Assembly (NCBI GenBank): GCA_048772705.1
Contig: JBLWGC010000201.1
Location: forward strand, 39,025 to 103,024
DNA length: 64,000 bases
Direction of reading: 5' to 3'
Source of the DNA: Leidyana gryllorum EB-2025a
Taxonomy: Eukaryota > Protista > Apicomplexa
In this document: positions 42,467 to 64,000 of the stretch, one piece after another
Layout of the letters: each line of letters begins with the position of its first letter
Position numbering within the stretch: the stretch's first letter is position 1
Notes under the pieces: model-generated
Told to the model about the DNA's origin: nothing
What the model saw: only the letters and a program-made list of their open reading frames with translations
The model's database searches: none
Translations under genes and position numbers: made by a program

Positions 42467-44475
42467 GAAACCCTCCCAGAAGTCTGTAACCTGTTGGCCG
42501 GAGCCAATCCGGCAAATTGCGTGTCTCGACCCGGGCCGGCCGGCCGGAGACACGGCAACACACGTGTGTACTTACCTTTTCGTTGCGTGCCGCGAACCAG
42601 AATTACCGTCGAGATCAACCATGCCTCCTAGAAAGAACAGTGAAGCCCGCGGGGCTGAAAGAGACTGAGAATGACTCAATGAGATGTTAGCTGGGGCGTC
42701 ACTGGATGCTGGTTGGGGCAGGTAGCGAATGGGGGTCAGTTGGCTGGGATAAAAAGTGCACAACGGGGAGGTGAGGCTCTGGTCGCAAAGTGGCGAAGCT
42801 CCTTGGGGGCTTTCTGGGATGTGTGGGGATGAGTTGCGGGAACTTACTTGGTGTGGGAACGTGCCAGACCAGTCTGAGTGGCACGAGGTCACGTCTTGGG
42901 AACATCTGCGGGGAAGAAAGCGAGCGCGAGCGAGAAGAGGGCTTTTTGGATCTGAGAACAGAAATAACAGTACAAGTCCCACGTCTCGCACACCAAATCT
43001 TGGGAAAAGTGGCTCGTTTGGGCTGCTATCTGTTGCTTGCGAGCCGCACGAGAGCTAAATTAAGGAGTCTGACGACTAGTTTGCCTGTAACCTTTGGTTC
43101 GGCGTTTCGGTCGGCTTCGATGGCTGTTGTGACTGCTGTTTGCTTTTGGATTATGTGGTTTATGTGGTTGTTTATCGCTGCATTGTACTGTGTTTGCGTG
43201 TTTGCGACTGTTTAGCTTTCAATTCTCTACACGTTCCGGTTGCTGTAGCGTGCGCAAGTAAGGTCTGATGTGGTGTGTATTGTGCTAATAAAAGACTGTG
43301 ACGATATAGCTGTGTTGCTTAGTATGTTGACAGGTATCGTGCTTGTTATGTATTGACTAGTTTGCCTGTAACCTTTGGTTCGGCGTTTCGGTCGGCTTCG
43401 ATGGCTGTTGTGACTGCTGTTTGCTTTTGGATTATGTGGTTTATGTGGTTGTTTATCGCTGCATTGTACTGTGTTTGCGTGTTTGCGACTGTTTAGCTTT
43501 CAATTCTCTACACGTTCCGGTTGCTGTAGCGTGCGCAAGTAAGGTCTGATGTGGTGTGTATTGTGCTAATAAAAGACTGTGACGATATAGCTGTGTTGCT
43601 TAGTATGTTGACAGGTATCGTGCTTGTTATGTATTGATTTGTGAGACTATATGAGCTGGAGATGCATGATTGTATGAGTGTATGGCGTGTATTTTGGTAA
43701 CTGTGCTGTGATGTGTAGTATGCTCAGTTTGCTAAAGTGAATATGGAGCAACTTGGAAGGTTATGTGTGAGTGATATTGGTTTAGATGGTTTGTCTGCTA
43801 GGTGTGAAGGGTCTAGAGTGAGCTAGCGATTCGCTCGTTAAGTGAGGGAGTATTTGTAGACGTATAAAAGCTTGTAATGCTAGATATAGGGGAATCAAAT
43901 ACATCGGAGTTGAATTGAGAGTGTTGAGAAGAATGTCATGAGTCCAATGCGTATCGTGGAGGTTATGTATTGGAGTGAATGGGAATTTGTAAGAATATGT
44001 GTATGGGGTCAAGTTATGCATGATATTTGGGTGTTGATTCGGACGACATGAATTTGGCTAATGATAGGTAGGTTAATAGGAGTATATTGACAATTGTGAT
44101 GTAGTTCGAGGTGTGGTAAGAGGGTGGTGGTCAGTTGTTTGCTATAAAACATTGAGAGAGTGTATATATGCTAAGAGTTATGAGTATTCGAATTGTTAGT
44201 GTACGAGCGGGATGTTAAGGCTGATATGTATATTGAGTAATAGTGTGCGTGAGGAAGTATTGATGGGGTGTGGGGAGCGCCCTTGTCGCTTCGCTCGGGC
44301 GCTTCCCCATACCCATCGTTTCTGTGAGATTTATTTATTGATGGAATACTTAGCAACGTATCGTGAATGTGATAAGCAGAACGAACCAATGGCATCAATC
44401 TTGCGTGCAATTGCTCCGGAACGATATGTACGAGTTCAAATGACTTGTAGAGAAGTGCCATTTAAGTACCTATAA

Positions 44476-45515
44476 TAGCAAAGAAGTGTGAAACAAGTGT
44501 CAAACAACTCGGAAACCAGTGTCAAACAAGGCTCGAACATGTTGCAAACAAGTGTCAAACATGTCGCGAAGCAAGGGTCAAACAAGTTCGCAACAAGTCT
44601 CAAACATGTTGCAAACAACTCGCAAACAAGTGTCAAAAGAGTAGCAAACATGTGGCAAACAAGTGTCAAACAACTCGCAAACAAGTGTCAAACATGTATC
44701 AAGCAAGTGTCAAGCATGTGGCAAACATGTGTCAAACAAGTGAGAAGCATGTGTGTAACACGTGGCAAACAAGTAGCAAAACAAGTGCCAAAGATGTCGC
44801 AAACAAGTGTCAAACGAGTGTCAAACGAGTGTCAAACGAGTGTCAAACCAGTGTGGAACATGTGGCAAAAAAGTGTTAAACATGTGGCGAACAAGTCTCA
44901 ACGGAGTTTCAAACAAGTGTAAAGCATGTGGCAAAGAACTGGCAAGCAAGTGTAAAGCATGTGGCAAACAAGTTTCAAAGAAGTATCAAACAAGTAGCAA
45001 ACAAGTGTCAAACGAGTGTCGAACAAGTGTGGAACATGTGGCAAAAAAGTGTTAAACATGTGGCGAACAAGTCTCAACGGAGTTTCAAACAAGTGTTAAA
45101 CATGTGGCAAAGAACTGGCAAGCAAGTGTAAAGCATGTGGCAAACAAGTTTCAAACGAGTGTCAAACAAGTGTGGAACATGTGGGAAAAAAGTGTTAAAC
45201 ATGTGGTGAACAAGTCTCAACGGAGTTTCAAACAAGTGTTAAACATGTGGCAAAGAAGTGGCAAACACGTGTCAAACGAGAGTCAAACAAGTGTGAAATA
45301 TGTGGCAGAAAAGTGTTTAACATGTGGCGAACAAGTCTCAACTGAGTGTCAAAGAAGTATGAAAGATGTGGCAAAGAAGTGGCAAGCAAGTGTAAAGCAT
45401 GTAGCAAACAAGTGTCAAACGAGTGTCAAACAAGTAGCAAGCAAGTAGCAAACAAGTAGGAAACAGGTAGCAAACAAGTGTCAAACATGTCGCAAACAAG
45501 TCTCGAACATGTTGC
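44476..45515. repeat. 11-bp satellite of H3
   Basis: Same array as H0 and H1. Confidence 0.95.
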
Positions 45516-45908
45516 AAAGGGGTATTGAAGGTGCTACAAAGAGATGTGTAACACAAGTATCATCTGGTACAAGTTGCACACTGGTGACGAACTCTGCTTT
45601 TTTGAAAAATTTGGTAAGGGGTTAAGGATGACGACATGAAAAATTCCGATGAATTAGTAACGGGTTAAGGATGACGACATGAAAAATTCCGATGAATTTG
45701 TAACGAGATAAGGATGACGACATCAAAAAACACCGATAAACTTGTAACGAGATAAGGGTGACGACATCAAAAAATGTGATAAATTTCGCTTAGAGACACC
45801 CAATAACCTCAGTAGACGAGAAATGCGGTAGGGGAGACTGAGAATGACTCAATGAGATGTTAGCTGGGGCGTCACTGGATGCTGGTTGGGGCAGGTAGCG
45901 AATGGGGG

Positions 45909-48900
45909 TTGTGCAGGTCGGCGAAACCCGCAAGGGTGAGCCCGACCATTACCGTAGGTTTTTTGGGGGTTCTTAGGGGGTACCAGAAACGACTTTTAGT
46001 GAAATAGGAATTTGATTAGGAGCTCTAGACTAGCTCTCTCGCTTACCTTAGGAATAGTAGTGGCCTGATTAGTTAGCAGCCAGATTTTAGGCGAAATCTC
46101 ACCGCTAGAATAGGAGATAGGCGACTCTCTCGAGCTCTCTGAGACACGAGAAGGCCTGATTTTTGCAAAAATGAGACTTCCCAAACTTCAATTGGCTCGT
46201 TCGCTACAGCAAACTAGCCTCCCATCGAGATGTAAGGGTCGTCAGACTCCTTAATTTAGCTCTCGTGCGGCTCGCAAGCAACAGATAGCAGCCCAAACGA
46301 GCCACTTTTCCCAAGATTTGGTGTGCGAGACGTGGGACTTGGACTGTTATTTTTGTTCTCAGATCCAAAAAGCCCTCTTCTCGCTCGCGCTCGCTTTCTT
46401 CCCCCCCAGATGTTCCCAAGACGTGACCTCGTGCCACTCAGACTGGTCTGGCACGTTCCCACACCAAGTAAGTTCCCACACCTCATCCCCACACATCCCA
46501 GAACGCCCCCAAGGAGCTTCGCCACTTTGCGACCAGAGCCTCACCTCCCCATTGTGCAGTTTTTATCCCAGCCAACTGACCCCCATTCGCTACCTGCCCC
46601 AACCAGCATCCAGTGACGCCCCAGCTAACATCTCATTGAGTCATTCTCAGTCTCCCCTACCGCATTTCTCGTCTACTGAGGTTATTGGGTGTCTCTAAGC
46701 GAAATTTATCACATTTTTTGATGTCGTCACCCTTATCTCGTTACAAGTTTATCGGTGTTTTTTGATGTCGTCATCCTTATCTCGTTACAAATTCATCGGA
46801 ATTTTTCATGTCGTCATCCTTAACCCGTTACTAATTCATCGGAATTTTTCATGTCGTCATCCTTAACCCCTTACCAAATTTTTCAAAAAAGCAGAGTTCG
46901 TCACCAGTGTGCAACTTGTACCAGATGATACTTGTGTTACACATCTCTTTGTAGCACCTTCAATACCCCTTTGCAACATGTTCGAGACTTGTTTGCGACA
47001 TGTTTGACACTTGTTTGCTACCTGTTTCCTACTTGTTTGCTACTTGCTTGCTACTTGTTTGACACTCGTTTGACACTTGTTTGCTACATGCTTTACACTT
47101 GCTTGCCACTTCTTTGCCACATCTTTCATACTTCTTTGACACTCAGTTGAGACTTGTTCGCCACATGTTAAACACTTTTCTGCCACATATTTCACACTTG
47201 TTTGACTCTCGTTTGACACGTGTTTGCCACTTCTTTGCCACATGTTTAACACTTGTTTGAAACTCCGTTGAGACTTGTTCACCACATGTTTAACACTTTT
47301 TTCCCACATGTTCCACACTTGTTTGACACTCGTTTGAAACTTGTTTGCCACATGCTTTACACTTGCTTGCCAGTTCTTTGCCACATGTTTAACACTTGTT
47401 TGAAACTCCGTTGAGACTTGTTCGCCACATGTTTAACACTTTTTTGCCACATGTTCCACACTTGTTCGACACTCGTTTGACACTTGTTTGCTACTTGTTT
47501 GATACTTCTTTGAAACTTGTTTGCCACATGCTTTACACTTGCTTGCCAGTTCTTTGCCACATGCTTTACACTTGTTTGAAACTCCGTTGAGACTTGTTCG
47601 CCACATGTTTAACACTTTTTTGCCACATGTTCCACACTGGTTTGACACTCGTTTGACACTCGTTTGACACTTGTTTGCGACATCTTTGGCACTTGTTTTG
47701 CTACTTGTTTGCCACGTGTTACACACATGCTTCTCACTTGTTTGACACATGTTTGCCACATGCTTGACACTTGCTTGATACATGTTTGACACTTGTTTGC
47801 GAGTTGTTTGACACTTGTTTGCCACATGTTTGCTACTCTTTTGACACTTGTTTGCGAGTTGTTTGCAACATGTTTGAGACTTGTTGCGAACTTGTTTGAC
47901 CCTTGCTTCGCGACATGTTTGACACTTGTTTGCAACATGTTCGAGCCTTGTTTGACACTGGTTTCCGAGTTGTTTGACACTTGTTTCACACTGCTACTTG
48001 ATAGGTACTTAAATGACACTTCTTACAAGTCATTTGAACTCATACATATCGTTCCGGAGCAATTGCACGCAAGATTGATGCCATTGGTTCGTTCTGCTTA
48101 TCACATTCACGATACGTTGCTAACTATTCCATCAATAAATAAATCTCACAGAAACAATGGGTACGGGGAAGCGCCCGAGCGAAGCGACAAGGGCGCTCCC
48201 CACACCCCATCAATACTTCTTCACGCACACTATTACTCAACGTACATATCAGCCTTAACATCCCGCTCGTACACTAACAATTCGAATACTCATAACTCTT
48301 AGCATATATACACTCTCTCAATGTTTTATAGCAAACAACTGACCACCACCCTCTTACCACACCTCGAACTACATCACAATTGTCAATAGATTTCCATTAA
48401 CCTACCTATCATTAGCCAAATTCATGTCGTCCGAATCAACACCCAAATATCATGCATAACTTGACCCCATACACATATTCTTACAGATACCCATTCACTC
48501 CAATACATAACGTCCACGATACGCATTGGACTCACGACATTCTTCTCAACACTCTCAATTCAACTCCGATGTATTTGATTCCCCTATATCTAGCATTACA
48601 AGCTTTCATACCTCTCCAAATACTCCCTCACTTAACGAGCGAATCGCTCACTCACTCTAGACCCTTCACACCTAACAGACAAACCATCTAAACCAATATC
48701 ACTCACACATAACCTTCCAAGTTGCTCCATATTCACTTTAGCAAACTGAGCATACTACACATCACAGCACAGTTACCAAAATACACGCCATACACTCATA
48801 CAATCATGCATCTCCAGCTCATATAGTCTCACCAATCAATACATAACAAGCACGATACCTGTCAACATACTAAGCAACACAGCTATATCGTCACAGTCTT

Positions 48901-49116
48901 TTATTAGCACAATACACACCACATCAGACCTTACTTGCGCACGCTACAGCAACCGGAACGTGTAGAGAATTGAAAGCTAAACAGTCGCAAACACGCAAAC
49001 ACAGTACAATGCAGCGATAAACAACCACATAAACCACATAATCCAAAAGCAAACAGCAGTCACAACAGCCATCGAAGCCGACCGAAACGCCGAACCAAAG
49101 GTTACAGGCAAACTAG
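45909..49116 (+). mobile_element. H4: complete, uninterrupted non-autonomous Helitron-like copy (3208 bp)
   Basis: TTGTGCAGG...GGCAAACTAG; empty site aatggggg|tcagtt matches 36723-36736, no TSD. Confidence 0.9.
46970..47995. repeat. 11-bp satellite of H4 (reverse orientation)
   Basis: ACACTTGTTTG units. Confidence 0.95.
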
Positions 49117-51146
49117 TCAGTTGGCTGGGATAAAAACTGCACAATGGGGAGGTGAGGCTCTGGTCGCAAAGTGGCGAAGCTCCTTGGGGGCGTTCTGGGA
49201 TGTGTGGGGATGAGGTGTGGGAACTTACTTGGTGTGGGAACGTGCCAGACCAGTCTGAGTGGCACGAGGTCACGTCTTGGGAACATCTGGGGGGGAAGAA
49301 AGCGAGCGTGAGCGAGAAGAGGGCTTTTTGGATCTGAGAACAAAAATAACAGTCCAAGTCCCACGTCTCGCACACCAAATCTTGGGAAAAGTGGCTCGTT
49401 TGGGCTGCTATCTGTTGCTTGCGAGCCGCACGAGAGCTAAATTAAGGAGTCTGACGACCCTTACATCTCGATGGGAGGCTAGTTTGCTGTAGCGAACGAG
49501 CCAATTGAAGTTTGGGAAGTCTCATTTTTGCAAAAATCAGGCCTTCTCGTGTCTCAGAGAGCTCGAGAGAGTCGCCTATCTCCTATTCTAGCGGCGAGAT
49601 TGCGCCTAAAATCTGGCTGCCAACTAATCAGGCCACTACTATTCCTAAGGTAAGCGAGAGAGCTAGTCTAGAGCTTCTAATCAAATTCCTATTTCACTAA
49701 AAGTCGTTTCTGGTACCCCCTAAGAACCCCCAAAAAACCTACGGTAATGGTCGGGCACACCCTTGCGGGTTTCGCCGACCTGCACAATTGGTGAGACTAT
49801 ATGAGCTGGAGATGCATGATTGTATGAGTGTATGGCGTGTATTTTGGTAACTGTGCTGTGATGTGTAGTATGCTCAGTTTGCTAAAGTGAATATGGAGCA
49901 ACTTGGAAGGTTATGTGTGAGTGATATTGGTTTAGATGGTTTGTCTGTTAGGTGTGAAGGGTCTAGAGTGAGTCAGCGATTCGCTCGTTAAGTGAGGGAG
50001 TATTTGGAGAGGTATGAAAGCTTGTAATGCTAGATATAGGGGAATCAAATACATCGGAGTTGAATTGAGAGTGTTGAGAAGAATGTCGTGAGTCCAATGC
50101 GTATCGTGGACGTTATGTATTGGAGTGAATGGGTATCTGTAAGAATATGTGTATGGGGTCAAGTTATGCATGATATTTGGGTGTTGATTCGGACGACATG
50201 AATTTGGCTGATGATAGGTAGGTTAATAGGAGTATATTGACTAGTTTGCCTGTAACCTTTGGTTCGGCGTTTCGGTCGGCTTCGATGGCTGTTGTGACTG
50301 CTGTTTGCTTTTGGATTATGTGGTTTATGTGGTTGTTTATCGCTGCATTGTACTGTGTTTGCGTGTTTGCGACTGTTTAGCTTTCAATTCTCTACACGTT
50401 CCGGTTGCTGTAGCGTGCGCAAGTAAGGTCTGATGTGGTGTGTATTGTGCTAATAAAAGACTGTGACGATATAGCTGTGTTGCTTAGTATGTTGACAGGT
50501 ATCGTGCTTGTTATGTATTGATTGGTGAGACTATATGAGCTGGAGATGCATGATTGTATGAGTGTATGGCGTGTATTTTGGTAACTGTGCTGTGATGTGT
50601 AGTATGCTCAGTTTGCTAAAGTGAATATGGAGCAACTTGGAAGGTTATGTGTGAGTGATATTGGTTTAGATGGTTTGTCTGTTAGGTGTGAAGGGTCTAG
50701 AGTGAGTCAGCGATTCGCTCGTTAAGTGAGGGAGTATTTGGAGAGGTATGAAAGCTTGTAATGCTAGATATAGGGGAATCAAATACATCGGAGTTGAATT
50801 GAGAGTGTTGAGAAGAATGTCGTGAGTCCAATGCGTATCGTGGACGTTATGTATTGGAGTGAATGGGAATTTGTAAGAATATGCGGATGGAGTCAAGTTA
50901 TGCATAGGATTTGAGTGTTGATGCGGACGACATGAATTTGGCTAATGATAGGTAGGTTAATAGGAGTATATTGACAATTGTGATGTAGTTCGAGGTGTTG
51001 TAAGAGGGTGGTGGTCAGTTGTTTGCTATAAAACATTGAGAGAGTGTATATATGCTAAGAGTTATGAGTATTCGAATTGTTAGTGTACGAGCGGGATGTT
51101 AAGGCTGATATGTATGTTGAGTAATAGTGTGCGTGAAGAAGTATTG

Positions 51147-51200
51147 ATGGGGTGTGGGGAGCGCCCTTGTCGCTTCGCTCGGGCGCTTCCCCGTACCCAT
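51147..51200 (-). other. GC-rich stem-loop with a GCGAAGC core just downstream of the Rep/Hel stop; retained in the short copies
   Basis: GGGGAAGCGCCC...GGGCGCTCCCC, extended by ATGGG...CCCAT. Confidence 0.7.
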
Positions 51201-51236
51201 CTTTCTGCATTCAATGATTGAGCCACGGTGTAGTTG

Positions 51237-54200
51237 TCAACGCGTAATCATAGAAATGTAAAAGGGAGATGGTGGAATGTGGCTAAGGTGAATGAAGTTG
51301 TGTGATGCAACTATACGGAGTGTATTTGATCTTGGTGTAAGATGAAGGGCAACTTGCTCGATTGAATGGTTGTTTAACATGTTGTAACGACCCGATGCGT
51401 TGCGCTGATCGATGAGAATGAGAGTGGGTAGAGTTTGCGCATCGATGAACACTGTTCTCGTACAACCTCTGCCTTCGACGCGGAGCGAATGGTGGTTTGA
51501 GAGTATTGTGGAGCTGAAACGTTTGGCAGTGATGGAGTAATGATTAGCTGCAATTGAGGTGAGCATGTTGAGATTAGCATGTTGAGGGTGGATTATGGTG
51601 ATTATCGGGCAGGTGTTGAGAAAGAAGGGGGCAAAGGAGTTGTGCTTGATATCGTCGTAGTAGAAGACAACTTGGGGAAGGCGTTGTGGCCAATATGTGA
51701 ATGGCAGACGATCAGGAGTAAGCCAAGATTTAGCGAGGATGGTTTCGTTTGGTAATTTGCCGAAGAACTTGATGTGGTCGAGTTTGGTTGCTCGGCTGGC
51801 AGCGACGTAGAGGAAGCGATAATCTTGCTTGGACAGGTCAATCCCATAAGGATGATCGAATGTACGACCCTGCGCTTTGTGGACAGTTAGGCCCCATGCA
51901 AGATCGATAGGGTAGATTCGCTTATTCTTATGTAGCATCGGAGCAACTCGACATAGTTTGTTGCGATTGAGTTTGATCCACAAGTCGTGTTTGAGGGCTT
52001 TATGTAAATGGCCAATGCTTCCATTGGTGTAGCCTTTCTTGACGCTTATGTTGGTGGTTATCATGGTCTTGGCGTTGCGTTTGAGTATGAGTTGCGTCCA
52101 CTTGTGTATGGTTCGTTTCGAGTTGGTTCTAGTGGATATTGTCTTGATAGTATATGAGGTTGTTACTTGAATGGGTGTGCCAGGCATATGTTGTACTCTC
52201 ATCTTGTTATAGCGTGTCCTTTCTTCATTGTGACGGAATAGAACGAAAGGTAAGGTGTTGAGATCTTTATCAGTGCCTTTGTGAGCATCTACGAACTTGG
52301 TGATGGTGGATTTATCGCCGTGTTGAAGAGCTTCGAGGAAGTTGAGGAGATCTGGATCTCGTCCGTGTCGTACGTTATCGATGAGATCGAACCTTGTAAA
52401 GAGCTTTGTGAAGGATGGATCTTCATCAAGTGGAGTTGCTCTGACAGGTGGGAGCTGATCGAAGTCACCGAAGGCGATAATAGAGATTCCGCCATATGGT
52501 AGGCTCTTGCGAGAATCTGGTTTCGAGTTACCGAGGTTAGTTAACCCTAAGTTTAAGTCGCTTAGAAGCCGTGGCGCCACCATGGATATTTCATCGATAA
52601 GGATCAATTCGACGTGTGACGCGTTGTTATGGAGTGTATTCCACGAGCGTGATTGTGTAGTGAGTACGCTTCCATGGTTCAAGCCAGCAAAATGATGAAT
52701 GGTTTGGCCGTTGATTAAATAGGCAGCCGTTCCTGTTGGTGCGATGACTTGGCACATGGGCTTGTCGAGGGTTGTCTTGCCCTCATTGGTATCAATGACT
52801 TGGCAGATATGTCGTATCTTGTTGATGAGGAACGATTTTCCAGTGCCTCCTTTACCATGAATGAGCCATAACAGCTGTGAAGTCCTGCTTGTGTGGATCC
52901 ACTTGTAGAACTCTATGAGTACTCGAAACTGCGAGGTAGTAACGGTTGAGTTGGGGTCGAAGGAAAGGGTAGATTGAAGCTGATTTGTTGCGTCATGGTC
53001 ATCGTCGTCATCATTGTCAGAGTCGTCCGAAGTTGGAATGTCGAATCCAGGATTGTTGAAATCGTCGTTGACGTGTTCTGGTTGATCATCTTCGTCAGGG
53101 GCGTTATCATCGTCGGTATCGTAGCAAATGGAATTTGGTTGCCATCGTGGTTCGTATGGCCGTGATTGATGAGCACGTTCAAGGATCTCTTGCTGAGTTT
53201 CCGGTGTGTAATCGTTGAAGCACAAGAGTTGATGGACGTCTCTCCAAGGTAAGAAGTAATAGGCGAGTGATTTGTCGTCGTCAGCTGGGGGTAATGTGGG
53301 TGGGTATTGGCCTGCGACAACTACGGGAGCTTGGCGACGTGTGAGATAAAGTTTCTTAGCCGGTGGAACTGTCATGGGTATGGATCCTGGTTGCCTCTTC
53401 GAAACGACATAGTCTCGCGTGAATTCAAATATGGTTAGAGATTCGAGCATGGAAGGACGATTGGCGTAAATCGTTGGGTATGGTGTAGGTAGTCGAATCT
53501 TGGTTGCTTCATCAACAGATTGTGGGCGGTGTATAGCGACCATGAAGTTGAAAGGCTTGAGATATACTGTGTTCCATGTGGTCGTTACTGGAAAGCGGCC
53601 TTGGCAGGTGAGTGTTGCTTCTTGTAGACTCAGGCGACGTGATAGGTTTAGGTCTTGTGTTTTGAATAGCGCTTGAGTCATTGTGCGAGTGTTATCGAAC
53701 GCATCTTCTTTGAGCAATGTGGGTTCGGACTTAGAGACGTACTTGGTGATATATTGGATTGCTTGGGCGATAGTTGTTACCGGAGAGATGTCCATGTTAG
53801 AGTTGGTGTATGGGAAGATGATGGGGTTGAAGTCGTTGATGTTGGCGTCCATAACACGTCTTTCGGCAAGATAGATAGGGGACGGAAGTGATTGTGCTAT
53901 CAGGCGATAGTAGGTTTCATGATTTGATATTCCGATGAGGGCGAGCCATTGATCGAATGTAAGTTGATCGAATTCCATGTGGGTGAACTCCATTGTTTTG
54001 TATTGGAGTCTCTTTTGCCAACTGTATACGATTGCTCTCGCAGCTCTTCTATCTTTGCTTTCCGTATGTGTTGGCAGTAGGAGTTTGCCTATGGGTGTAG
54101 GGAGTCGTGGAAAGCGCCATTTGCATGTATTGAGGGGTTTGAGATTCTTCTGACAACGTTGATAATGTGTATGGGTTTGAACGCGGCGTATCTCTTCGTC

Positions 54201-56132
54201 ATCTGTCGATGCGAATATGATTTTGTTGAGGAACGTTTCCCATTCGAGAATTCTCCCCGCGCGTTCGCCCGGCGTGCACAACTCGAGTGGTTTAGGTGTA
54301 TTTTTACACCATAGAAGGCAATGGGCGTGAGGAGTACCGCGTACTTGATACTCAATCCTCTCGTAGTGATGGTAGAGGGGGTAGCCGAGCGTAGTGAGAT
54401 GACGATTAAACTCTTGGAGGAGTAGTGGGAAGAGCTGGCCAGCAAACTCAGCAGTCAGTCCATAATCCTTGACGGTTCCGAGAGGAAAATCTTGAAGGCT
54501 ATAGTAGTATTGAGTTTCTTGTAGGGTTGGATACTTGAAGAACAAATGGGGATCGGATAGTGAGATGGTAAGGAAGATTGACGGTACCCCAAATTGCGCA
54601 ATCATGTTCTGAAGTTGATATCTGGAATTGACGAAATAAGGTGGAAAGGGCGGGATAGTGGCAAGAACGGTGCGAATCATCCGATGGTGTGATACATTCT
54701 TATTATTGCGAACCATGTCAACGAGTTCTCGTACAATTTCTCGGTCGAGTATCTTGCGAGTGGCTGTTGTGGACTCTAAGTGAGGTTCTGGGTCTTCAGT
54801 GTCAGCTGGTGAAGTGGTTGAGATGTGGCGCTGATGCACTTCTTGATTGATCCAGAATTGCCCTTTCTTGGATACTGTTTCCTTGAGTTTAGCTGCCAAT
54901 AGAGTGAAGACGTATAGGTGGTCGCGAATATATTCTAGACGATAACTAGACAGGCGCTGCTTTATATATGTTGAGAGGTGAAGATTCTTGGGTATGTGGT
55001 GCATCGCGTTATTGGTATTGCGACGCGAAGCGGAAGTTGAGTGCTTGAGCAGTTGTTGATAACTCGTGTTCCCGTTACATGAGTAGAAGAAGTGTGGGAA
55101 GGAGTCGTATTCTATATCGTGAGACGGAGACTTGAAGTAGTATCGTGAAGAAGCGCCAATAGCATGATAGTAGATTTTGTCTTCGAACGGATTGGCCTGA
55201 TAGTTGACTTCCGTAGATCCCATGAGTATAGAGGGAGCTTCAGGCGGGGGTGTAGTCTCGAGTGTGGAGCGTTCGATCTGTCCTGTATGAGGAGACGTTT
55301 CAGTGAGCTCGAGCACTGGGAGGTTGTCGGGAAGATCCTGTTGTATGTGGGAGGTCCCGTAGCGGGAATCTCGGAGCGATAGTAGGTTGAACGCGTGAAT
55401 GATGTTTCTACTGTTGAGTTTTCCATAGAAGTGGGGGTGGAAACTGTGTGTGTTGAAGTAAAACTTCGCTGGTATGACTTGGGAGCGTTCAGCCAGTGGA
55501 ATGAGCTCGGAGAAGGCGTATAGATCAGTATACTTGTGGTATACGGCTATAGTTGAGTGAATCCCTGAGTAATGCTTCAGCCACACGCAAGGTTGTGCAA
55601 GGGCGATCGCTCGTTTCTCAATCATGGATAAATTGAGAAGGAAGAGGTTGGGTAGTGGATTGATTACGTTGCTTGCACACCGGATGATAGGTTGGGTATA
55701 GTCAGAGCACGTGCGACAGATGACGAGGAGCTGGGCAATCAATGGGAGTATTTGGTCGATTGACTCTGGTAGTTGATAGGGGAAATGCGGCCGAAGTCTA
55801 TGTAGTATCATGAACGTGGGTGTGGGATCGAGACGAATTCTGATAGAATCGGGCAGGTTGGTCCATTGAACGGGTGTCAAGTCGTCCATAGAACATCGTG
55901 AACCGCAATAACTACACGCGAACAACTTGAAAGAGCCGAAATGAAGTGGAGAATCGACTGATTCAAGGATGCCAGCAGTGACCCATGATTGAAGTAAGGT
56001 ATTTCTTGCTTGTCGGATTGTGCTCCACGCATGAGCTTGGTCTTGAAGTGTTGGTGGTTGGATGAGCAATGATTGAACTCTCCAAATGCGTTGTAACTCT
56101 TCGAAAGTTTCATCTTGGAGTAGCCGATTCAT
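51237..56132 (-). CDS. Rep/Helicase transposase (HUH-Y2 Rep plus PIF1-like SF1 helicase), Helentron/HLE2-type, 1631 aa
   Basis: PSIFLTIS; IEYQVRGTPHAHCLLW (HUH); QTHTH..RC.K...CKWRFP; YITKYVSKSE; GKGGTGKS; ILIDEISMV; FGDFDQLPPV; LAWGLTVHKAQG; YVAASRA. Confidence 0.95.
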   Translation of the reverse strand: MNRLLQDETFEELQRIWRVQSLLIQPPTLQDQAHAWSTIRQARNTLLQSWVTAGILESVDSPLHFGSFKLFACSYCGSRCSMDDLTPVQWTNLPDSIRIRLDPTPTFMILHRLRPHFPYQLPESIDQILPLIAQLLVICRTCSDYTQPIIRCASNVINPLPNLFLLNLSMIEKRAIALAQPCVWLKHYSGIHSTIAVYHKYTDLYAFSELIPLAERSQVIPAKFYFNTHSFHPHFYGKLNSRNIIHAFNLLSLRDSRYGTSHIQQDLPDNLPVLELTETSPHTGQIERSTLETTPPPEAPSILMGSTEVNYQANPFEDKIYYHAIGASSRYYFKSPSHDIEYDSFPHFFYSCNGNTSYQQLLKHSTSASRRNTNNAMHHIPKNLHLSTYIKQRLSSYRLEYIRDHLYVFTLLAAKLKETVSKKGQFWINQEVHQRHISTTSPADTEDPEPHLESTTATRKILDREIVRELVDMVRNNKNVSHHRMIRTVLATIPPFPPYFVNSRYQLQNMIAQFGVPSIFLTISLSDPHLFFKYPTLQETQYYYSLQDFPLGTVKDYGLTAEFAGQLFPLLLQEFNRHLTTLGYPLYHHYERIEYQVRGTPHAHCLLWCKNTPKPLELCTPGERAGRILEWETFLNKIIFASTDDEEIRRVQTHTHYQRCQKNLKPLNTCKWRFPRLPTPIGKLLLPTHTESKDRRAARAIVYSWQKRLQYKTMEFTHMEFDQLTFDQWLALIGISNHETYYRLIAQSLPSPIYLAERRVMDANINDFNPIIFPYTNSNMDISPVTTIAQAIQYITKYVSKSEPTLLKEDAFDNTRTMTQALFKTQDLNLSRRLSLQEATLTCQGRFPVTTTWNTVYLKPFNFMVAIHRPQSVDEATKIRLPTPYPTIYANRPSMLESLTIFEFTRDYVVSKRQPGSIPMTVPPAKKLYLTRRQAPVVVAGQYPPTLPPADDDKSLAYYFLPWRDVHQLLCFNDYTPETQQEILERAHQSRPYEPRWQPNSICYDTDDDNAPDEDDQPEHVNDDFNNPGFDIPTSDDSDNDDDDDHDATNQLQSTLSFDPNSTVTTSQFRVLIEFYKWIHTSRTSQLLWLIHGKGGTGKSFLINKIRHICQVIDTNEGKTTLDKPMCQVIAPTGTAAYLINGQTIHHFAGLNHGSVLTTQSRSWNTLHNNASHVELILIDEISMVAPRLLSDLNLGLTNLGNSKPDSRKSLPYGGISIIAFGDFDQLPPVRATPLDEDPSFTKLFTRFDLIDNVRHGRDPDLLNFLEALQHGDKSTITKFVDAHKGTDKDLNTLPFVLFRHNEERTRYNKMRVQHMPGTPIQVTTSYTIKTISTRTNSKRTIHKWTQLILKRNAKTMITTNISVKKGYTNGSIGHLHKALKHDLWIKLNRNKLCRVAPMLHKNKRIYPIDLAWGLTVHKAQGRTFDHPYGIDLSKQDYRFLYVAASRATKLDHIKFFGKLPNETILAKSWLTPDRLPFTYWPQRLPQVVFYYDDIKHNSFAPFFLNTCPIITIIHPQHANLNMLTSIAANHYSITAKRFSSTILSNHHSLRVEGRGCTRTVFIDAQTLPTLILIDQRNASGRYNMLNNHSIEQVALHLTPRSNTLRIVASHNFIHLSHIPPSPFYISMITR

Positions 56133-56169
56133 TTGAAGGAACAGTAGTCAAAATTGGGTAAAGAATAGG

Positions 56170-57528
56170 ATGAACACGACATTAGACAGAACACTGTGGA
56201 TTGAAGGACAGCTTTTTTGTCAAATATTGATTGTTGCACTCAAATCATCCACTGTTACACAGAAGCTTGTTGAGATGGAAAAGAACACATCAAGTTCGGA
56301 TATTCCGCTGGGTTACCTTGCGTTGGAACGGCTGATGGAGCAACGTCGTCGTCAAACTGGAAGAGGGAACGCGAGCGACATGTTGATGCAAACAGCCAGT
56401 CGCGAGAGTGGAGTGGAGGAGCGCCGAGAGGATAGCGCAGTGGTGACGAGTGAGAAGAAGCAACACATGCAGGAAATGATTAATAAGGTGTTGCAAGACA
56501 CGATTTACGTTGGTCGCTCACCTGAGTTTGTTGCTCCTGTTGTGATCTCGTGGTTCTCAGACGTGAGGAAGCACTTATTCTTCGATCAGGGAGATGATGT
56601 GAAGTCTAAGTTGCGTGATGGTTGTAGGTATCGTCACTACAACACCTTGGAGCGAGCTCTGGAGGAGGTGGCGGAAGCAGCTGAAGTGTTCGATGGAGTG
56701 AGGGGGCGAGTTAACTTGAGTGCTTGGTACTTAATCTCTTCGTGCCAGTACTTCCAAGGGCCAGTGATAGTTGGCACTCAAATCGATTTCCAAGCACTGT
56801 GCATGAACGTGAATGATGTGTTTAAGCCGCGCACGAGTGTGAGGAAATTCGAGTTGAATGATCTCGCTGGATTGCGCAATCATTGGGTGTTCGTTCACGT
56901 GAGGATCTTGGAGTTCCGGAGAAAGCAGTTAGCCATCAGGATGGGCTTGGATCGACGGCCTGTGCTCGAACCGATGACGGATCGTGACACGGAAGAGCTA
57001 GTTCGGATGGCTGAGGAAGAAGAGAAGAGGGTTGCGAGACGGAGAGCGGAGATGAATGACCGGTTGCGAGAAATCAATATCAGGGAGTCAGAGCTGGGTC
57101 AAGTTGCGAAGCGTGCGAGGACTATAAAGGGGGTGGGGGAAGTTGGTCTTGGACCTTCCGTAGCAAGTAAGCGAGAGGAAGGACCGAGAATCGAGGCGGC
57201 GGATGGGGACTTAAAGGGGGAAATAGAGCAGATGAAGAAAATGATGATGAGTATGGCAAACCGGTTGGAACGAATGGTGATGAAGGAACCTGATGTCGTT
57301 GTTGATCATGAATCATCGATTGAATCAACCCTGATTCAACCGACGTTGCAGCTGGACGATGTTGCGGGGGGGAACGGCGTGTGGCCTCTTGGGGTTCCTG
57401 TGTCAGGTGTGGAAGATCGTCAGATGCCAGAAGGAAAGGTCGGGGCTACTGAGGGAGGTGGAGAGCAGAGTCCAGTAAGGGAGGATGAAGGAGATACAGA
57501 TAGAGAGGGCGGAGAAGGTAGCAGTTAG
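56170..57528 (+). CDS. Hypothetical 452-aa protein (charged/coiled-coil-like, acidic tail), divergent from Rep/Hel
   Basis: Long non-repetitive ORF with no overlapping long antisense ORF; no recognised domain. The start codon is uncertain. Confidence 0.65.
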   Translation: MNTTLDRTLWIEGQLFCQILIVALKSSTVTQKLVEMEKNTSSSDIPLGYLALERLMEQRRRQTGRGNASDMLMQTASRESGVEERREDSAVVTSEKKQHMQEMINKVLQDTIYVGRSPEFVAPVVISWFSDVRKHLFFDQGDDVKSKLRDGCRYRHYNTLERALEEVAEAAEVFDGVRGRVNLSAWYLISSCQYFQGPVIVGTQIDFQALCMNVNDVFKPRTSVRKFELNDLAGLRNHWVFVHVRILEFRRKQLAIRMGLDRRPVLEPMTDRDTEELVRMAEEEEKRVARRRAEMNDRLREINIRESELGQVAKRARTIKGVGEVGLGPSVASKREEGPRIEAADGDLKGEIEQMKKMMMSMANRLERMVMKEPDVVVDHESSIESTLIQPTLQLDDVAGGNGVWPLGVPVSGVEDRQMPEGKVGATEGGGEQSPVREDEGDTDREGGEGSS

Positions 57529-57734
57529 GAGAAGTGTCTTCACGTACCTGATAGGTAGCATGACGGACCGATTGCATCAATATTACGAGTGACTGCTTGT
57601 GAGTAAGATGTAGGACGACAATGGAATGCGTTAATGCGGGGGAGGAGAGAAGAACTGCAAGTAAAGTTGAAAGCTTAGTGGAACAGAATGAAAGTAGTAT
57701 ATGGCTTACGAACTACTCGCAGAGTAGTCGCATA

Positions 57735-58762
57735 CAAGCAGCAAACATCTCGCAAAGAACTGGCAAACCAGTCGCAAACACGTGTCAAGAAAGTCGCAAA
57801 CAAGTGGGAAACATGTGGCAAACAAGTTTGAAACAAAGTGTCAAGTGAGTGGCAAACATGTGGCAAACAAGTAGCAAGTGAGTGGCAAACATGTGTCAAA
57901 CAAGTAGCAAGTGAGTGGCAAAGATGTGGCAAAGAAGTAGCAAACATGTGACAAACAAGTGTCAAGTATGTCGAAAACAAGTGCCAAACATGTTGGAAAC
58001 AAGTGGCAAACAAATGGCAAACAAGTGGTAAACAAGTCGCAAACAAGTGTCAAGTATGTGGGAAACAAGTTTGAAACAAGTAGCAAACATGTTGGAAACA
58101 AGTGGCAAACAAGTGGCAAACAACTCCCAAGTATGTGGCAAACATGTGTGAAAGAAGTATCAAAAATGGCACGAACATGTGTCAAACAAGTAGCAAATAT
58201 GTTGCGAACAAGTGTCAAGTATGTCGGAAACAAGTGACAAACAAGTATCAAACATGTGATAAACAAGTAGCAAACATGTAGCAAACATGTTGGAAACAAG
58301 TGTCAAGTTTGTCGCTCACAAGTGGCAAACATGTGGCAAACAAGTAGCAAATATGTCGCAAACATGTTGCAACAGTGTCGCAACAGTGTCGCAAACATGT
58401 GGTAGACAAGTGTCAAACAAGTACCACACATGTCGCAAACATGTGGTAGACAAGTGTGAAAGAGGTAATAAATATGTGACAAACAAGTGACAAACAAGTA
58501 TCAAACATGTGACAAACAAGTAGCAAACATGTGACAAACAAGTAGCAAACATGTTACAAACAAGTGTCAAGTTTGTCGCTCACAACTGCCAAACATGTTG
58601 CAAACAGGTGGCAAACAAGTAGCAAACATGTGACAAACAAGTGACAAACAAGTAGCAAACATGTGACAAACAAGTATCAAACCAGTGGCAAACAAGTAGC
58701 AAACATGTGACAAACAAGTAGGAGACACGTGACAAACAAGTAGCAAACATGTGCCAAACAAG
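57735..58762. repeat. 11-bp satellite of H5 (diverged variant)
   Basis: CAAACAAGTRG/CAAACATGTGR units with a different higher-order pattern. Confidence 0.93.
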
Positions 58763-58947
58763 TATTATAGATGTGTAAGACATTAATCATGTCGTACACC
58801 GTGTACAAGGGTGCTACAAGTGTGATAGCATTCTACAGAGATGTGCATCGGGTAGGGAAGAGCCACAGCTTACCGTGTGCGCAGTGTGTGAGGTTTGCGA
58901 GGGTTATTGGTGGCATGTTTAGTATGTATTGGGTTGCTAGAAAAACT

Positions 58948-60192
58948 TTATTGATTGTTTGTTGGGTTCGAAAAAACTTGCTGTCTGTCTCCCTGTTCGT
59001 GAGTCGTAACCCTTATTCCAGCGCGGGGTGTTGCCCTTGCTTGCGGTGGTGGATTGCTAACAGCCGCAGTGAGAGTGGGAGAGAGAGAAGGGGGAGCAGT
59101 AGCCAACGTAGGGGGGTAAAAAGGGTTCGGACCTCCGTAATACAGCTGAGGAGGTCCGTAAAAGGGGGTAGGAACTCCTGACGGTAGCACACTGTATGGG
59201 GCGAGCTCGTGGGAGTTGCCGATGCCCATATATGGGTTGTACATGGCTTGTTGATGACGCCATTGGAGGGTTCGCAGTTCCATTTGGAACTGGAGGTGGC
59301 GGTCGATGTTCTGTATGTGGAACATCTCCACCTCCATCGCTTGCTTCAGCTCTTCAATCTTCCTCTTGTGTCGATCCTTGAGCCTCTTAGCCTGCTGAAC
59401 TGCGGGTTCACCCCAAATGGGCACGCCATGTGTGGCAATGGGTGCGTCAAGGGCTTGAGAGCGAGCCCGAGCGGAGCTCCCTTGTAGGGGGATGGGTTCC
59501 ATGTATGCTTGGTGACCCGGTGGGTGGGAGAGAGGTGTTCGAAGAGGAACAGTGTGATTGTGGATGATATCCTCAACCAACCGTTCGTCTTTGAGTAGGG
59601 ATGAGGGGGGAGAAGCTGCCGCAGGGGGAAGAAGGGGGGGGAGTTGGGAGGCGCCGGTGGTAGCCGTCGAGACGGTGGGTGGTGTCTGTCCAAGCCCGAG
59701 CGGCTGGGAGAGCGGAGGGCTTGCTGTCGAGGCGGCTTCGGTGAGGTAGGACCGCGTCGGAGCCCTCACAACCATTGTGGTTGTCGCTTCCACAGGGGCT
59801 TCGGGCTCGGAGGGCTTTGGAGGGGGACTTACCTGTGTCAGAGAAGGGGGTGAACTTTCAGCGGGCTGGGTAGAGGGGGTAGCAGGGCTGTTGGGGCGCG
59901 ACTCGGGAGGCGTGGCCTCGATGGTCTCTTCTTCGAGCTCAGTGTTGCTCGAGGCTTCCATGTTGAGCGTCGTTGGTACGCTGGGAAGGGGCAGAGCCTC
60001 ACCTTGAGCTTCAGTGGGTGCGTCACAAAGGGCTTTCTGTGCCATGGTCAATCTTAAGCGATACAAAAAACTGGTGGCAACTTTGTATTTACAAAAAAAT
60101 TTGTAACGAGATAAGGGTGACGACATTGGTAGAATCGCGAAAATTTGCGCAAAAATTTCGATGAGACTTGAACGGGTTAAGGATGACGACAA
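58948..60192 (-). CDS. Hypothetical Pro/Ser/Thr-rich protein (up to 414 aa; probable start MAQK near 60045)
   Basis: Long ORF with a central coiled-coil-like stretch (RLKDRHKRKIEELKQAME) and a Tyr/Pro tail. Confidence 0.5.
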   Translation of the reverse strand: MSSSLTRSSLIEIFAQIFAILPMSSPLSRYKFFCKYKVATSFLYRLRLTMAQKALCDAPTEAQGEALPLPSVPTTLNMEASSNTELEEETIEATPPESRPNSPATPSTQPAESSPPSLTQVSPPPKPSEPEAPVEATTTMVVRAPTRSYLTEAASTASPPLSQPLGLGQTPPTVSTATTGASQLPPLLPPAAASPPSSLLKDERLVEDIIHNHTVPLRTPLSHPPGHQAYMEPIPLQGSSARARSQALDAPIATHGVPIWGEPAVQQAKRLKDRHKRKIEELKQAMEVEMFHIQNIDRHLQFQMELRTLQWRHQQAMYNPYMGIGNSHELAPYSVLPSGVPTPFYGPPQLYYGGPNPFYPPTLATAPPSLSPTLTAAVSNPPPQARATPRAGIRVTTHEQGDRQQVFSNPTNNQ

Positions 60193-60347
60193 GAAAAAAC
60201 ACGCAAAATATTTGCACTGGCAGCGGCAACTGTATGAGGCATTGAAGGTACATAAGGTAAGAGACTCACCTATTACATGTGTTGTTCTCGTACGTGATCA
60301 CTTCGTGTATCTTATGCTACAACGCTGCCGTCTTACCATCTTTTGTT

Positions 60348-60743
60348 TTAGATGATGTTGCCCATCTCAACTTGGAACCCTTTCCCGCAAATCTGACACT
60401 TCATGTATCCCCGATGTACATGAGGAGGGGTAGGGGGAGCTAGGGGAGGGGTAGGGGCTGCCAGCCTTGGCAATGGCTTCAGGTCCACCGTCGAGGCCAG
60501 TGAGTCTCTGCGAGTGCTCAATAACTCTGTTTGCTCATCTTGAACAACCGTTGAGAGACACCCAATGACCTCAGTAGACGAGACCGAAGCTGAGGGAGAC
60601 TGAGAATCACTCAGTGGCATGCTAACTGGGGGGCCACTGGATGCTGGCTGGGGGAGGGAGCGAATGGGCGAGGGGTTAGCTGGCTGGGGAAAAAACCGAA
60701 CAACCGGGGGTTCAGGCTCCATTGGCTGGAGCTCTACTCGCAA
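60348..60743 (-). CDS. Possible exon/ORF (131 aa, Pro-rich, CxxC)
   Basis: The same frame is conserved in the short copies (LPQPASS...SSTEVIGCL). Confidence 0.3.
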   Translation of the reverse strand: MRVELQPMEPEPPVVRFFPQPANPSPIRSLPQPASSGPPVSMPLSDSQSPSASVSSTEVIGCLSTVVQDEQTELLSTRRDSLASTVDLKPLPRLAAPTPPLAPPTPPHVHRGYMKCQICGKGFQVEMGNII

Positions 60744-60971
60744 TTGGGGTCGCGGGGCATCCCAGTTCCTCGCAAAGTGCCGAAGCTCTTCCTCGGCTAT
60801 GTGAGATGTGTGGGGATGAGGTGTGGGAACTTACTTGGTGTGGGAACGTGCCAGACCAGTCTGAGTGGCACGAGGTCACGTCTTGGGAACATCTGGGGGG
60901 GAAGAAAGCGAGCGCGAGCGAGAAGAGGGCTTTTTGGATCTGAGAACAAAAATAACAGTCCAAGTCCCACG

Positions 60972-63900
60972 TTGTGCAGGTCGGCGAAACCCGCAAGGGT
61001 GAGCCCGACCATTACCGTAGGTTTTTTGGGGGTTCTTAGGGGGTACCAGAAACGACTTTTAGTGAAATAGGAATTTGATTAGGAGCTCTAGACTAGCTCT
61101 CTCGCTTACCTTAGGAATAGTAGTGGCCTGATTAGTTAGCAGCCAGATTTTAGGCGAAATCTCACCGCTAGAATAGGAGATAGGCGACTCTCTCGAGCTC
61201 TCTGAGACACGAGAAGGCCTGATTTTTGCAAAAATGAGACTTCCCAAACTTCAATTGGCTCGTTCGCTACAGCAAACTAGCCTCCCATCGAGATGTAAGG
61301 GTCGTCAGACTCCTTAATTTAGCTCTCGTGCGGCTCGCAAGCAACAGATAGCAGCCCAAACGAGCCACTTTTCCCAAGATTTGGTGTGCGAGACGTGGGA
61401 CTTGGACTGTTATTTTTGTTCTCAGATCCAAAAAGCCCTCTTCTCGCTCGCGCTCGCTTTCTTCCCCCCCAGATGTTCCCAAGACGTGACCTCGTGCCAC
61501 TCAGACTGGTCTGGCACGTTCCCACACCAAGTAAGTTCCCACACCTCATCCCCACACATCCCAGAACGCCCCCAAGGAGCTTCGCCACTTTGCGACCAGA
61601 GCCTCACCTCCCCATTGTGCAGTTTTTATCCCAGCCAACTGACCCCCATTCGCTACCTGCCCCAACCAGCATCCAGTGACGCCCCAGCTAACATCTCATT
61701 GAGTCATTCTCAGTCTCCCCTACCGCATTTCTCGTCTACTGAGGTTATTGGGTGTCTCTAAGCGAAATTTATCACATTTTTTGATGTCGTCACCCTTATC
61801 TCGTTACAAGTTTATCGGTGTTTTTTGATGTCGTCATCCTTATCTCGTTACAAATTCATCGGAATTTTTCATGTCGTCATCCTTAACCCGTTACTAATTC
61901 ATCGGAATTTTTCATGTCGTCATCCTTAACCCCTTACCAAATTTTTCAAAAAAGCAGAGTTCGTCACCAGTGTGCAACTTGTACCAGATGATACTTGTGT
62001 TACACATCTCTTTGTAGCACCTTCAATACCCCTTTGCAACATGTTCGAGACTTGTTTGCGACATGTTTGACACTTGTTTGCTACCTGTTTCCTACTTGTT
62101 TGCTACTTGCTTGCTACTTGTTTGACACTCGTTTGACACTTGTTTGCTACATGCTTTACACTTGCTTGCCACTTCTTTGCCACATCTTTCATACTTCTTT
62201 GACACTCAGTTGAGACTTGTTCGCCAGATGTTAAACACTTTTCTGCCACATATTTCACACTTGTTTGACTCTCGTTTGACACGTGTTTGCCACTTCTTTG
62301 CCACATGTTTAACACTTGTTTGAAACTCCGTTGAGACTTGTTCACCACATGTTTAACACTTTTTTCCCACATGTTCCACACTTGTTTGACACTCGTTTGA
62401 AACTTGTTTGCCACATGCTTTACACTTGCTTGCCAGTTCTTTGCCACATGTTTAACACTTGTTTGAAACTCCGTTGAGACTTGTTCGCCACATGTTTAAC
62501 ACTTTTTTGCCACATGTTCCACACTTGTTCGACACTCGTTTGACACTTGTTTGCTACTTGTTTGATACTTCTTTGAAACTTGTTTGCCACATGCTTTACA
62601 CTTGCTTGCCAGTTCTTTGCCACATGCTTTACACTTGTTTGAAACTCCGTTGAGACTTGTTCGCCACATGTTTAACACTTTTTTGCCACATGTTCCACAC
62701 TGGTTTGACACTCGTTTGACACTCGTTTGACACTTGTTTGCGGCATCTTTGGCACTTGTTTTGCTACTTGTTTGCCACGTGTTACACACATGCTTCTCAC
62801 TTGTTTGACACATGTTTGCCACATGCTTGACACTTGTTTGATACATGTTTGACACTTGTTTGCGAGTTGTTTCACACTTGTTTGCCACATGTTTGCTACT
62901 CTTTTGACACTTGTTTGCGAGTTGTTTCCAACATGTTTGAGACTTGTTGCGAACTGCTTTGACCCTTGCTTCGCGACATGTTTGACACTTGTTTGCAACA
63001 TGTTCCAGCCTTGCTTGACACTGGTTTCCGAGTTGTTTGACACTTGTTTCACACTTATTTGCTACTTGATAGGTACTTAAATGACACTTCTCTACAAGTC
63101 GTTTGAACTCGTACATATCGTTCCAGAGCAATTGCACGCAAGATTGATGCAATTGGTTCGTTCTACTTATCACATTCACGATAGCTTGCTAACTATTCCA
63201 TCAATAAATAAATCTCACAGAAACAATGGGTACGGGGAAGCGCCCGAGCGAAGCGACAAGGGCGCTCCCCACACCCCATCAATACTTCTTCACGCACACT
63301 ATTACTCAACTTACATATCAGCCTTATCATCCCGCTCGTACACTAACAATTCGAATACTCATAACTCTTAGCATATATACACTCTCTCAATGTTTTATAG
63401 CAAACAACTGACCACCACCCTCTTACCACACCTTGAACTACATCACAATTGTCAATATACTCCTATTAACCTACCTATAATTAGCCAAATTCATGTCGTC
63501 CGAATCAACACTCAAATCCTATGCATAACTTGACTCCATCCGCATATTCTTACAAATTCCCATTCACTCCGATAAATAATGTCCACGATACGCATTGGAC
63601 TCATGACATTCTTCTCAACACTCTCAATTCAACTGAATCTCATTGATCCCCCTATATCTAGCATTACAAGCTTTTATACGTCTACAAATACTCCTCAATC
63701 AACGAGCGAATCGCTGACTCACTCTAGACCCCTCACAGCCTAACAGACAAACCATCTAAACCAATATCACTCACACATAACCTTCCAAGTTGCTCCACAT
63801 TCACTTTAGCAAACTGAGCATACTACACATCACAGCACAGTTACCAAAATACACGCCATACACTCATACAATCATGCATCTCCAGCTCATATAGTCTCAC

Positions 63901-64000
63901 AAATCAATACATAACAAGCACGATACCTGTCAACATACTAAGCAACACAACTATATCGTCACAGTCTTTTATTAGCACAATACACACCACATCAGACCTT
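60972..64000 (+). mobile_element. H6: non-autonomous Helitron-like copy, 3' end beyond the window
   Basis: Begins TTGTGCAGG after cccacg (the uninterrupted host reads cccacg|tctcg); collinear with H4. Confidence 0.88.
62032..63065. repeat. 11-bp satellite of H6
   Basis: ACACTTGTTTG units. Confidence 0.95.

Follow-up and report, generated by a model that had tools for sequence, protein, structure and literature searches.

The DNA analysed in this study (the window) is the 64-kb stretch G000:C201:39025-103024, that is, positions 39025 to 103024 of contig JBLWGC010000201.1 of Leidyana gryllorum EB-2025a; the contig ends at window position 64000, and coordinates without a contig name refer to the window. 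Positions 50241-60971 hold H5, a copy of a Helitron-like rolling-circle transposon whose sense strand is the minus strand. Very probably, H5 is a young copy of the sole Helitron-like rolling-circle transposon family of this genome, and the complete element would be 11.2-11.3 kb long, with an intact Rep/helicase (Rep/Hel) gene, a conserved partner gene (open reading frame [ORF] 452, ORF452), a lineage-specific ORF414, a satellite array and arms containing the cis-acting sites. Loci on contigs C43, C25 and C107 of the same genome, and outside it contigs L025 (run ERR10900114) and L026 (run ERR10900105), were used for comparison. The order of parts given in an earlier note on this DNA, namely 3′ arm, hairpin, Rep/Hel, ORF452, satellite, ORF414, 43-bp repeats and 5′ arm, was recovered in full:

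50241..51207, minus strand: 3′ arm, 967 bp, non-coding, A/C-rich, terminating in ...GGCAAACTAG at 50241
~51150..51200, minus strand: GC-rich stem-loop with a GCGAAGC loop, 36 nt past the Rep/Hel stop codon
51237..56132, minus strand: Rep/helicase gene, 1631 aa, single ORF
56133..56169, no strand: 37-bp spacer between the divergent start codons of Rep/Hel and ORF452
56170..57528, plus strand: ORF452, the partner gene, head-to-head with Rep/Hel
57548..57586, no strand: linker remnant, with a counterpart in a short copy at 34893-34929
57709..58775, no strand: internal satellite, ~94 units of 11 bp (CAAACAAGTGG on the plus strand), ~70% unit identity
58948..60192, minus strand: ORF414, Pro/Ser/Thr-rich, with a coiled coil
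60085..60202, no strand: two degenerate 43-bp units, amplified to 4-5 copies in short elements
60554..60971, minus strand: proximal part of the H5 5′ arm, the distal ~420 bp missing
60972..64000, plus strand: H6, an inverted short copy inside H5, with its 5′ end TTGTGCAGGTCGGCG at 60972, running off the contig end

The distal ~420 bp of the 5′ arm are missing from H5 because H6 was inserted at 60972. Extension of the contig, as proposed in the earlier note, could not recover this end since the contig stops at 64000; it was supplied instead by a second copy, C43:184576-195885, which aligned to 50239-60972 at 99% identity, was uninterrupted at the H6 site and then ran on through the remaining ~420 bp of the arm, matching window positions 49367-49787. 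The full element is therefore 11.2-11.3 kb long, and H5 is complete except for the part beyond H6. A third young copy (on C25) was cut by another nested insertion and by the contig end. The three young copies agreed in the order and orientation of Rep/Hel, ORF452 and ORF414, as did stop-ridden older copies on C43 (~73.8-83 kb) and C107. In a decayed copy at C43 168.5-171 kb, ORF452 was still head-to-head with Rep/Hel; a match to ORF414 was not found there. The earlier proposal of an approximately 11-kb multi-gene rolling-circle element lying beside collinear, satellite-carrying non-autonomous copies is supported.

The Rep/Hel protein matched the Pfam profiles Helitron_like_N (PF14214, 38.9 bits with a cut-off of 28.9) and PIF1 (PF05970, 63.1 bits), both above their cut-offs, and PIF1 helicase structures were matched at 2e-16 in a sequence search of PDB. 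An HUH nuclease with two tyrosines is thus fused to a Pif1-like superfamily 1B (SF1B) helicase, the arrangement that defines the Helitron superfamily. When Rep/Hel was aligned to four database proteins, the HUH histidines (H602 and H604), both tyrosines (Y794 and Y798) and the Walker A (1093-1099) and Walker B (D1180 and E1181) residues were invariant; judged by its residues, Rep/Hel is catalytically intact. Between copies within the genome, its ratio of nonsynonymous to synonymous substitution rates (dN/dS) was 0.22-0.52. The H5 and C43 genes differed at 9 of 4893 sites, and the family has therefore been active very recently.

Only one close relative of Rep/Hel was present in a set of 5.8 billion proteins (P0001, 56% identical, run ERR10900114); the other relatives, all unclassified proteins, were 23-27% identical over the aligned parts. 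Scanning of JGI metagenome contigs and GTDB genome contigs gave no further relatives. Within the genome, the Helitron Rep domain occurred in this family only, in three copies. Such a distant Rep/Hel, only 23-27% identical to other Helitron-type proteins and with the Helraiser structure absent from its PDB sequence matches, might be expected if the locus were an integrated rolling-circle replicon, a virus-like element or a misassembled pile of repeats. This is, however, highly improbable: dozens of copies have identical ends and different flanks, four of them with matching empty sites, the same 8-11 kb unit lies on three contigs, and no capsid-like gene was seen.

The limits of the element were defined from distinct flanks among the loci fetched (45 for the 5′ end and 36 for the 3′ end) and from empty sites. 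Every 5′ flank (45/45) ended in T before TGTGCAGG, with G (32), T (10) or A (3) as the preceding base, and T came first in 36/36 of the 3′ flanks, followed by C in 35. All of the 5′ ends examined read T|TGTGCAGGTCGG; they did not have the 5′ TC of canonical Helitrons (HLE1), nor was the A|T insertion site of HLE1 found. CTAG, which agrees with the CTRR 3′ end of HLE1, was kept in 42/42 matches to the 3′-end pattern (a pattern that includes CTAG) and also in L025. Insertion was exact, with no target duplication and one T of ambiguous ownership, in four pairs of filled and empty sites, these being, among the copies listed further below, H4 in H3 compared with H1, H3 in Y compared with the H5 arm, H6 in H5 compared with C43, and Y in X compared with H1. 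The flanks and empty sites leave two readings of the element: TTGTGC...CTAG with N|TC as its target, or TGTGC...CTAGT with T|C as its target. With the shared T counted as host DNA, the insertion site agrees with the T|T or T|C of Helitron2, the register being ambiguous from sequence.

Both ends carry potential secondary structures. A hairpin at nt 8-39 of the 5′ end (-9.9 kcal/mol, z -2.27; 4/200 shuffles folded as well) corresponds to the 5′-terminal hairpin expected of Helitron2. The 3′ arm of H5 has a small subterminal hairpin, with a 4-bp AACC/GGTT stem ending 13 nt before the end (-4.7 kcal/mol, z -0.96), and a 5-bp stem occupied the same location in L025 (z -2.05). The arm also contains a GCCGACC motif complementary to GGTCGGC at the 5′ end; this inverted match between the ends spans 7 nt only, its two halves being 7 nt in from the 5′ end and ~36 nt in from the 3′ end. 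The stem-loop behind the Rep/Hel stop codon of H5 folded at -18.6 kcal/mol (z -3.5), and the L025 element had a post-stop hairpin at the same place (z -2.9), followed by an arm of ~1 kb and the end CTAG|TC. A tRNA-like stretch was observed in the 3′ flank of this element (L025:7600-7674, run ERR10900114).

Comparison with described elements showed that H5 resembles canonical Helitrons (HLE1, e.g. Helraiser) in its single Rep/Hel with HUH motif, two tyrosines and Pif1-like helicase, a CTAG end in agreement with CTRR, a possible small hairpin 13-18 nt ahead of the 3′ end (canonical Helitrons have one at 10-20 nt), the lack of terminal inverted repeats of any length, precise insertion with no target duplication, many non-autonomous copies with only the ends in common, and nesting into its own copies. 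It differs from them in having T/TGTGC instead of TC at the 5′ end, an N-T-C target with G favoured before T instead of A|T, a 5′ hairpin, and a strong stem-loop plus a ~1-kb arm between the Rep/Hel stop codon and the 3′ end; furthermore, none of the other Helitron-type proteins found is more than 27% identical to its Rep/Hel. Lacking both the 5′ TC and the A|T target, the element is not a textbook Helitron. Helitron2 elements share with it a T at the 5′ end, a 5′-terminal hairpin and, less clearly, a short inverted match between the 5′ end and a site upstream of the 3′ hairpin (PMC3627910), and they insert at T|T or T|C (bioRxiv 10.1101/2025.11.06.686955). Their asymmetric terminal inverted repeats, however, are 8-15 nt long and lie 0-2 nt from the 5′ end and 20-30 nt from the 3′ end (PMC3627910), compared with 7 nt at distances of 7 and ~36 nt here, and the 3′ end in the present element is the canonical CTAG; this comparison covers end features. 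Searches of the 1631-aa Rep/Hel with Pfam and NCBIfam revealed no endonuclease domain, and the element is therefore not a Helentron in the strict sense. Helitron-like elements are also known from another alveolate, Paramecium, where they form a clade branching apart from HLE1 and HLE2 (bioRxiv 10.1101/2025.11.06.686955); compared by description only, those differ in that they insert into telomeric repeats and cap germline chromosomes. As read from the terminal sequences, the ends of the present family are a mixture of two described groups, a canonical CTAG 3′ end being combined with a Helitron2-like 5′ T, 5′ hairpin and T|C target. Overall, this is a divergent Helitron-like family in which mixed ends go together with a conserved orphan partner gene and an internal satellite.

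The two accessory ORFs were too long to be chance products of a stop-poor strand, a possibility that was rejected since no run of 449 or 463 stop-free codons arose in 1000 dinucleotide shuffles. ORF452 is predicted to have an alpha/beta core at about residues 105-260, followed by a coiled coil and an acidic tail. A HMMER pass over 1.84 billion cluster representatives recovered as its relatives only the proteins of L025 and L026. The L025 protein (33% identity, E 4e-24) is encoded head-to-head with Rep/Hel across a gap of 125-150 bp, and the L026 protein (P0006, 510 aa, run ERR10900105) has the same head-to-head arrangement with a 38-bp gap; the Rep/Hel proteins of both contigs are ~52% identical to that of H5. 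A core of ~150 residues with invariant motifs is shared by the family. As relatives of ORF452 are found only beside related Rep/Hel genes in two other samples, it is considered a conserved partner gene.

Word-index protein searches with ORF452 and with ORF414 gave no match, nor did Pfam (E up to 10), NCBIfam or a PDB profile search for either protein. The AlphaFold model of ORF452 from the single sequence was unusable (predicted local distance difference test score [pLDDT] 39); a three-sequence model of the core reached pLDDT 73.5 and showed an alpha/beta domain leading into a long coiled coil. Foldseek and VIA-align searches with this model returned only coiled-coil matches to the long helix, which dominated the comparison so that the core was barely probed. 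Taken at the level of sequence and predicted structure, ORF452 is a conserved companion of this Rep/Hel lineage that matches no known family or fold.

ORF414 probably starts at an ATG at 60045 or 60126 and is largely of low complexity, rich in Pro, Ser and Thr, with one coiled-coil stretch. The earlier note had suggested looking for co-occurrence of the accessory ORFs with Rep/Hel in other copies or species and for dN/dS below 1. Both ORFs accompanied Rep/Hel in all coding copies of this genome, and ORF452 did so in L025 and L026 as well, but ORF414 occurred in this genome only, no relatives of it being found outside. For ORF414, dN/dS was 0.4-1.1 with few changes, near 1 in several pairs, and there was little indication of constraint. 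ORF414 may therefore be a passenger; it is linked to the element, and the case for its being a functional gene is a weak one.

Gene capture is a known habit of Helitrons. That ORF452, ORF414 or both were captured from the host and have no role in transposition would be in keeping with this habit, with the lack of known domains in either ORF, and with the dN/dS near 1 in several pairs and the isolation of ORF414. Yet such an origin appears rather unlikely, given that all placeable matches of ORF452 in this genome lay inside element copies, that no free-standing host copy of it was found, that its only relatives stand head-to-head with Rep/Hel in two elements whose Rep/Hel is ~52% identical, and that the start-to-start spacing is kept (37 bp in H5 and 38 bp in L026).

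Some of the observations above weigh against regarding H5 as a young copy of an element equipped in this way. The 5′ arm of H5 is itself broken by H6, only a weak hairpin is present at the 3′ end, the 5′ end and the target depart from TC and A|T, and the element was described from its sequence. In addition, ORF452 has no fold match and a core model of pLDDT 73.5 built from three sequences, and ORF414 combines a dN/dS of 0.4-1.1 with the lack of outside relatives.

From 33.9 kb onward, the window is occupied by a nest of this one repeat family. The 967-bp arm of H5 recurs at 33952, 43357, 49116 (inverted) and 64000 (inverted), with 94-99.8% identity between the arms of the short copies and that of H5. 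Apart from H6, the following copies and fragments were delimited:

33952..37401, minus strand: H1, a complete short non-autonomous copy with arm, stem-loop, linker, satellite, 77-bp piece, 4-5 x 43 bp, 120-nt segment and 672-nt 5′ unit
43357..45908, minus strand: 3′ part of H3, a short copy split by H4, with its 5′ part at 49117-49787
45909..49116, plus strand: H4, an inverted short copy nested in H3, with the empty site in H1 at 36729/36730
49117..49787, minus strand: 672-nt 5′ unit of H3, with the 5′ end at 49787
49788..50240, minus strand: arm fragment of an older copy, Y, the other piece being 43076-43356; H3 and H5 were both inserted in Y

The order of parts in H1 was that of H5 minus two blocks (51208 to ~57547 and ~58800-60553). 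In the earlier note, the short copies had been described as collinear deletion derivatives with visible deletion edges. Collinearity was upheld: the stem-loop is the final stretch common to H5 and the short copies, identity ends at 51207 and it resumes in the linker remnant at 57548-57586 (39 columns; 0/300 shuffles scored as high). The edges were less clean than described, as ~55 bp between the arm/stem-loop and the linker remnant of the short copies had no counterpart in H5. The homology claimed behind the satellite proved marginal (30 nt only, 1/300 shuffles as high), but that claimed for 60553-60660 and 36614-36720 was confirmed by the 120-nt segment (60554-60668 vs 36614-36728, 82% identity). 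The 5′ unit was 95% identical over the 203 bp present in H5, and the 43-bp units, amplified in the short copies and two-copy in H5, were 85-88% identical. Taken together, the linker, the 43-bp units and the 120-nt segment, which are the inner remnants, had ~77-88% identity with indels. With arms 95-99.8% identical and inner remnants far less so, the short copies are therefore best read as an old derivative lineage with an amplified 43-bp unit, not as simple two-deletion products of H5. Descent of the short copies from an older autonomous subfamily was also considered and rejected, because the older copies fitted the inner parts no better.

This mosaic of identity, together with the ~55 bp unmatched after the stem-loop and the failure of the older autonomous copies to fit the inner parts any better, could also have arisen if the short copies were a separate non-autonomous lineage whose ends were gained from the master through recombination, template switching or conversion; that the middle parts are collinear would then reflect old common ancestry only. 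We regard this as unlikely, though worth keeping in view, since five blocks have the same order and orientation with the satellite in the corresponding position, a two-copy seed of the 43-bp unit already exists within the autonomous element, and the match of the linker remnant is significant. In our reading of the alignments, the short copies probably represent an old internally deleted lineage whose ends were kept matched to the master.

The 1.07-kb satellite of H5 lies between the convergent ORF452 and ORF414, and the 11-bp array occupied the corresponding position in autonomous copies, whether young or old, as well as in every short copy. When a two-unit probe of the array was matched to the whole genome, the contigs with matches also had element ends, with one exception; the array has therefore been spread by the element and is not an independent satellite. 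Non-autonomous rolling-circle elements with tandem arrays have been described as DINE-1/HINE Helentrons in Drosophila (PMC4067079) and as carriers of Cg170 in oyster (PMC7492417). Here as there, an internal tandem array gives rise to short satellite arrays scattered through the genome; unlike in those cases, the autonomous master also has the array, placed between two accessory genes, and the unit is only 11 bp. A further difference from Helentrons is that Pfam found no endonuclease domain in the present Rep/Hel. In the window, the 11-bp arrays at 26035-27092 and 31966-33265 were recognised as one array split by a long terminal repeat (LTR) retrotransposon (within 25979-33949); its left side had only a 56-bp linker and no arm, and a unique stretch (33266-33949) separated the array from the 3′ end of H1.

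Genome-wide, 42 3′ ends, 63 5′ ends and 3 Rep domains were counted. The 5′ end of the element itself contains the preferred target TTGTGCAGG^TC, which accounts for the excess of 5′ ends; four different flanks ended in TTGTGCAGGT, and one 3′ flank started with TCGGCGAAACCCGC. These observations, made at C43:195866-204917 and other loci (L019, L052, L054 and L063-L070), may explain piles of 5′ ends. In the genome-wide lists, no circle-type junction with a 3′ end directly beside a 5′ end was present, the closest pairs being ~60 bp apart.

In the proposed mechanism, Rep/Hel would nick the 5′ end (T/TGTGC...) and the 3′ end (...CTAG), peel off the C-rich sense strand and join it at N-T-C sites without target duplication. 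The same enzyme would move the ~40-60 short copies, which keep only the arms, stem-loop, satellite and amplified 43-bp units. ORF452 most likely works with Rep/Hel, for example as a putative DNA-binding or assembly factor. More tentatively, the family could belong to a deep, unsampled Helitron-like lineage in apicomplexan-type parasites, which would be the first documented class II transposon there and whose transposase may be served by a dedicated partner of new fold (the ORF452 family), possibly acting through the 43-bp repeats or the 11-bp array; we hold this to be a rather doubtful extension.

In a survey of 64 apicomplexan genomes, no class II elements were reported, and Helitrons were explicitly sought without hits (PMC9141347); the text of the HELIANO survey mentions neither Apicomplexa nor Alveolata. 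Provided that the host is correctly assigned, this picture of apicomplexans without class II elements changes, a gregarine-like genome then containing a young Helitron family whose genes are intact and which has ~40-60 dependants. The conserved orphan gene next to Rep/Hel offers a specific candidate for a new Helitron cofactor, and the mixed ends matter for annotation tools that rely on TC/CTRR with the A|T rule or on the T|T rule. The family also offers a system in which to study how the genomes of these parasites are remodelled, through the spread of satellite arrays, nesting with LTR elements and the piling up of 5′ ends.

Transposon DNA makes up most of the 64-kb window, the long ORFs before 42.5 kb being those of Ty3/gypsy chromoviruses. 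The order of events in the nest was as follows. An LTR element, H1 and copy Y were inserted into an old copy, X. Y then became the target of H3, into which H4 was inserted, and likewise of H5, into which H6 was inserted. The LTR element (~37480-42665) lies inside the 120-nt segment of X, an older short copy (37428-37481 and 42661-42734), the two halves of which have a few bases in common, as expected of a target duplication. The 281-bp tandem duplication reported by Tandem Repeats Finder (43074-43637) corresponds to the first 283 nt of the Y arm followed by the start of H3 inserted there. A stretch of ~72 bp (50692-50762; 34403/34404 in H1) is absent from the arm of H1 and present in those of H3, H4, H5 and H6.

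Across H5 (50241-60971), the sense (minus) strand contained 11-20% G and 31-36% C. This skew persisted even over ORF452, which is encoded on the opposite strand, and points to mutation biased by strand and not to an effect of codon usage.

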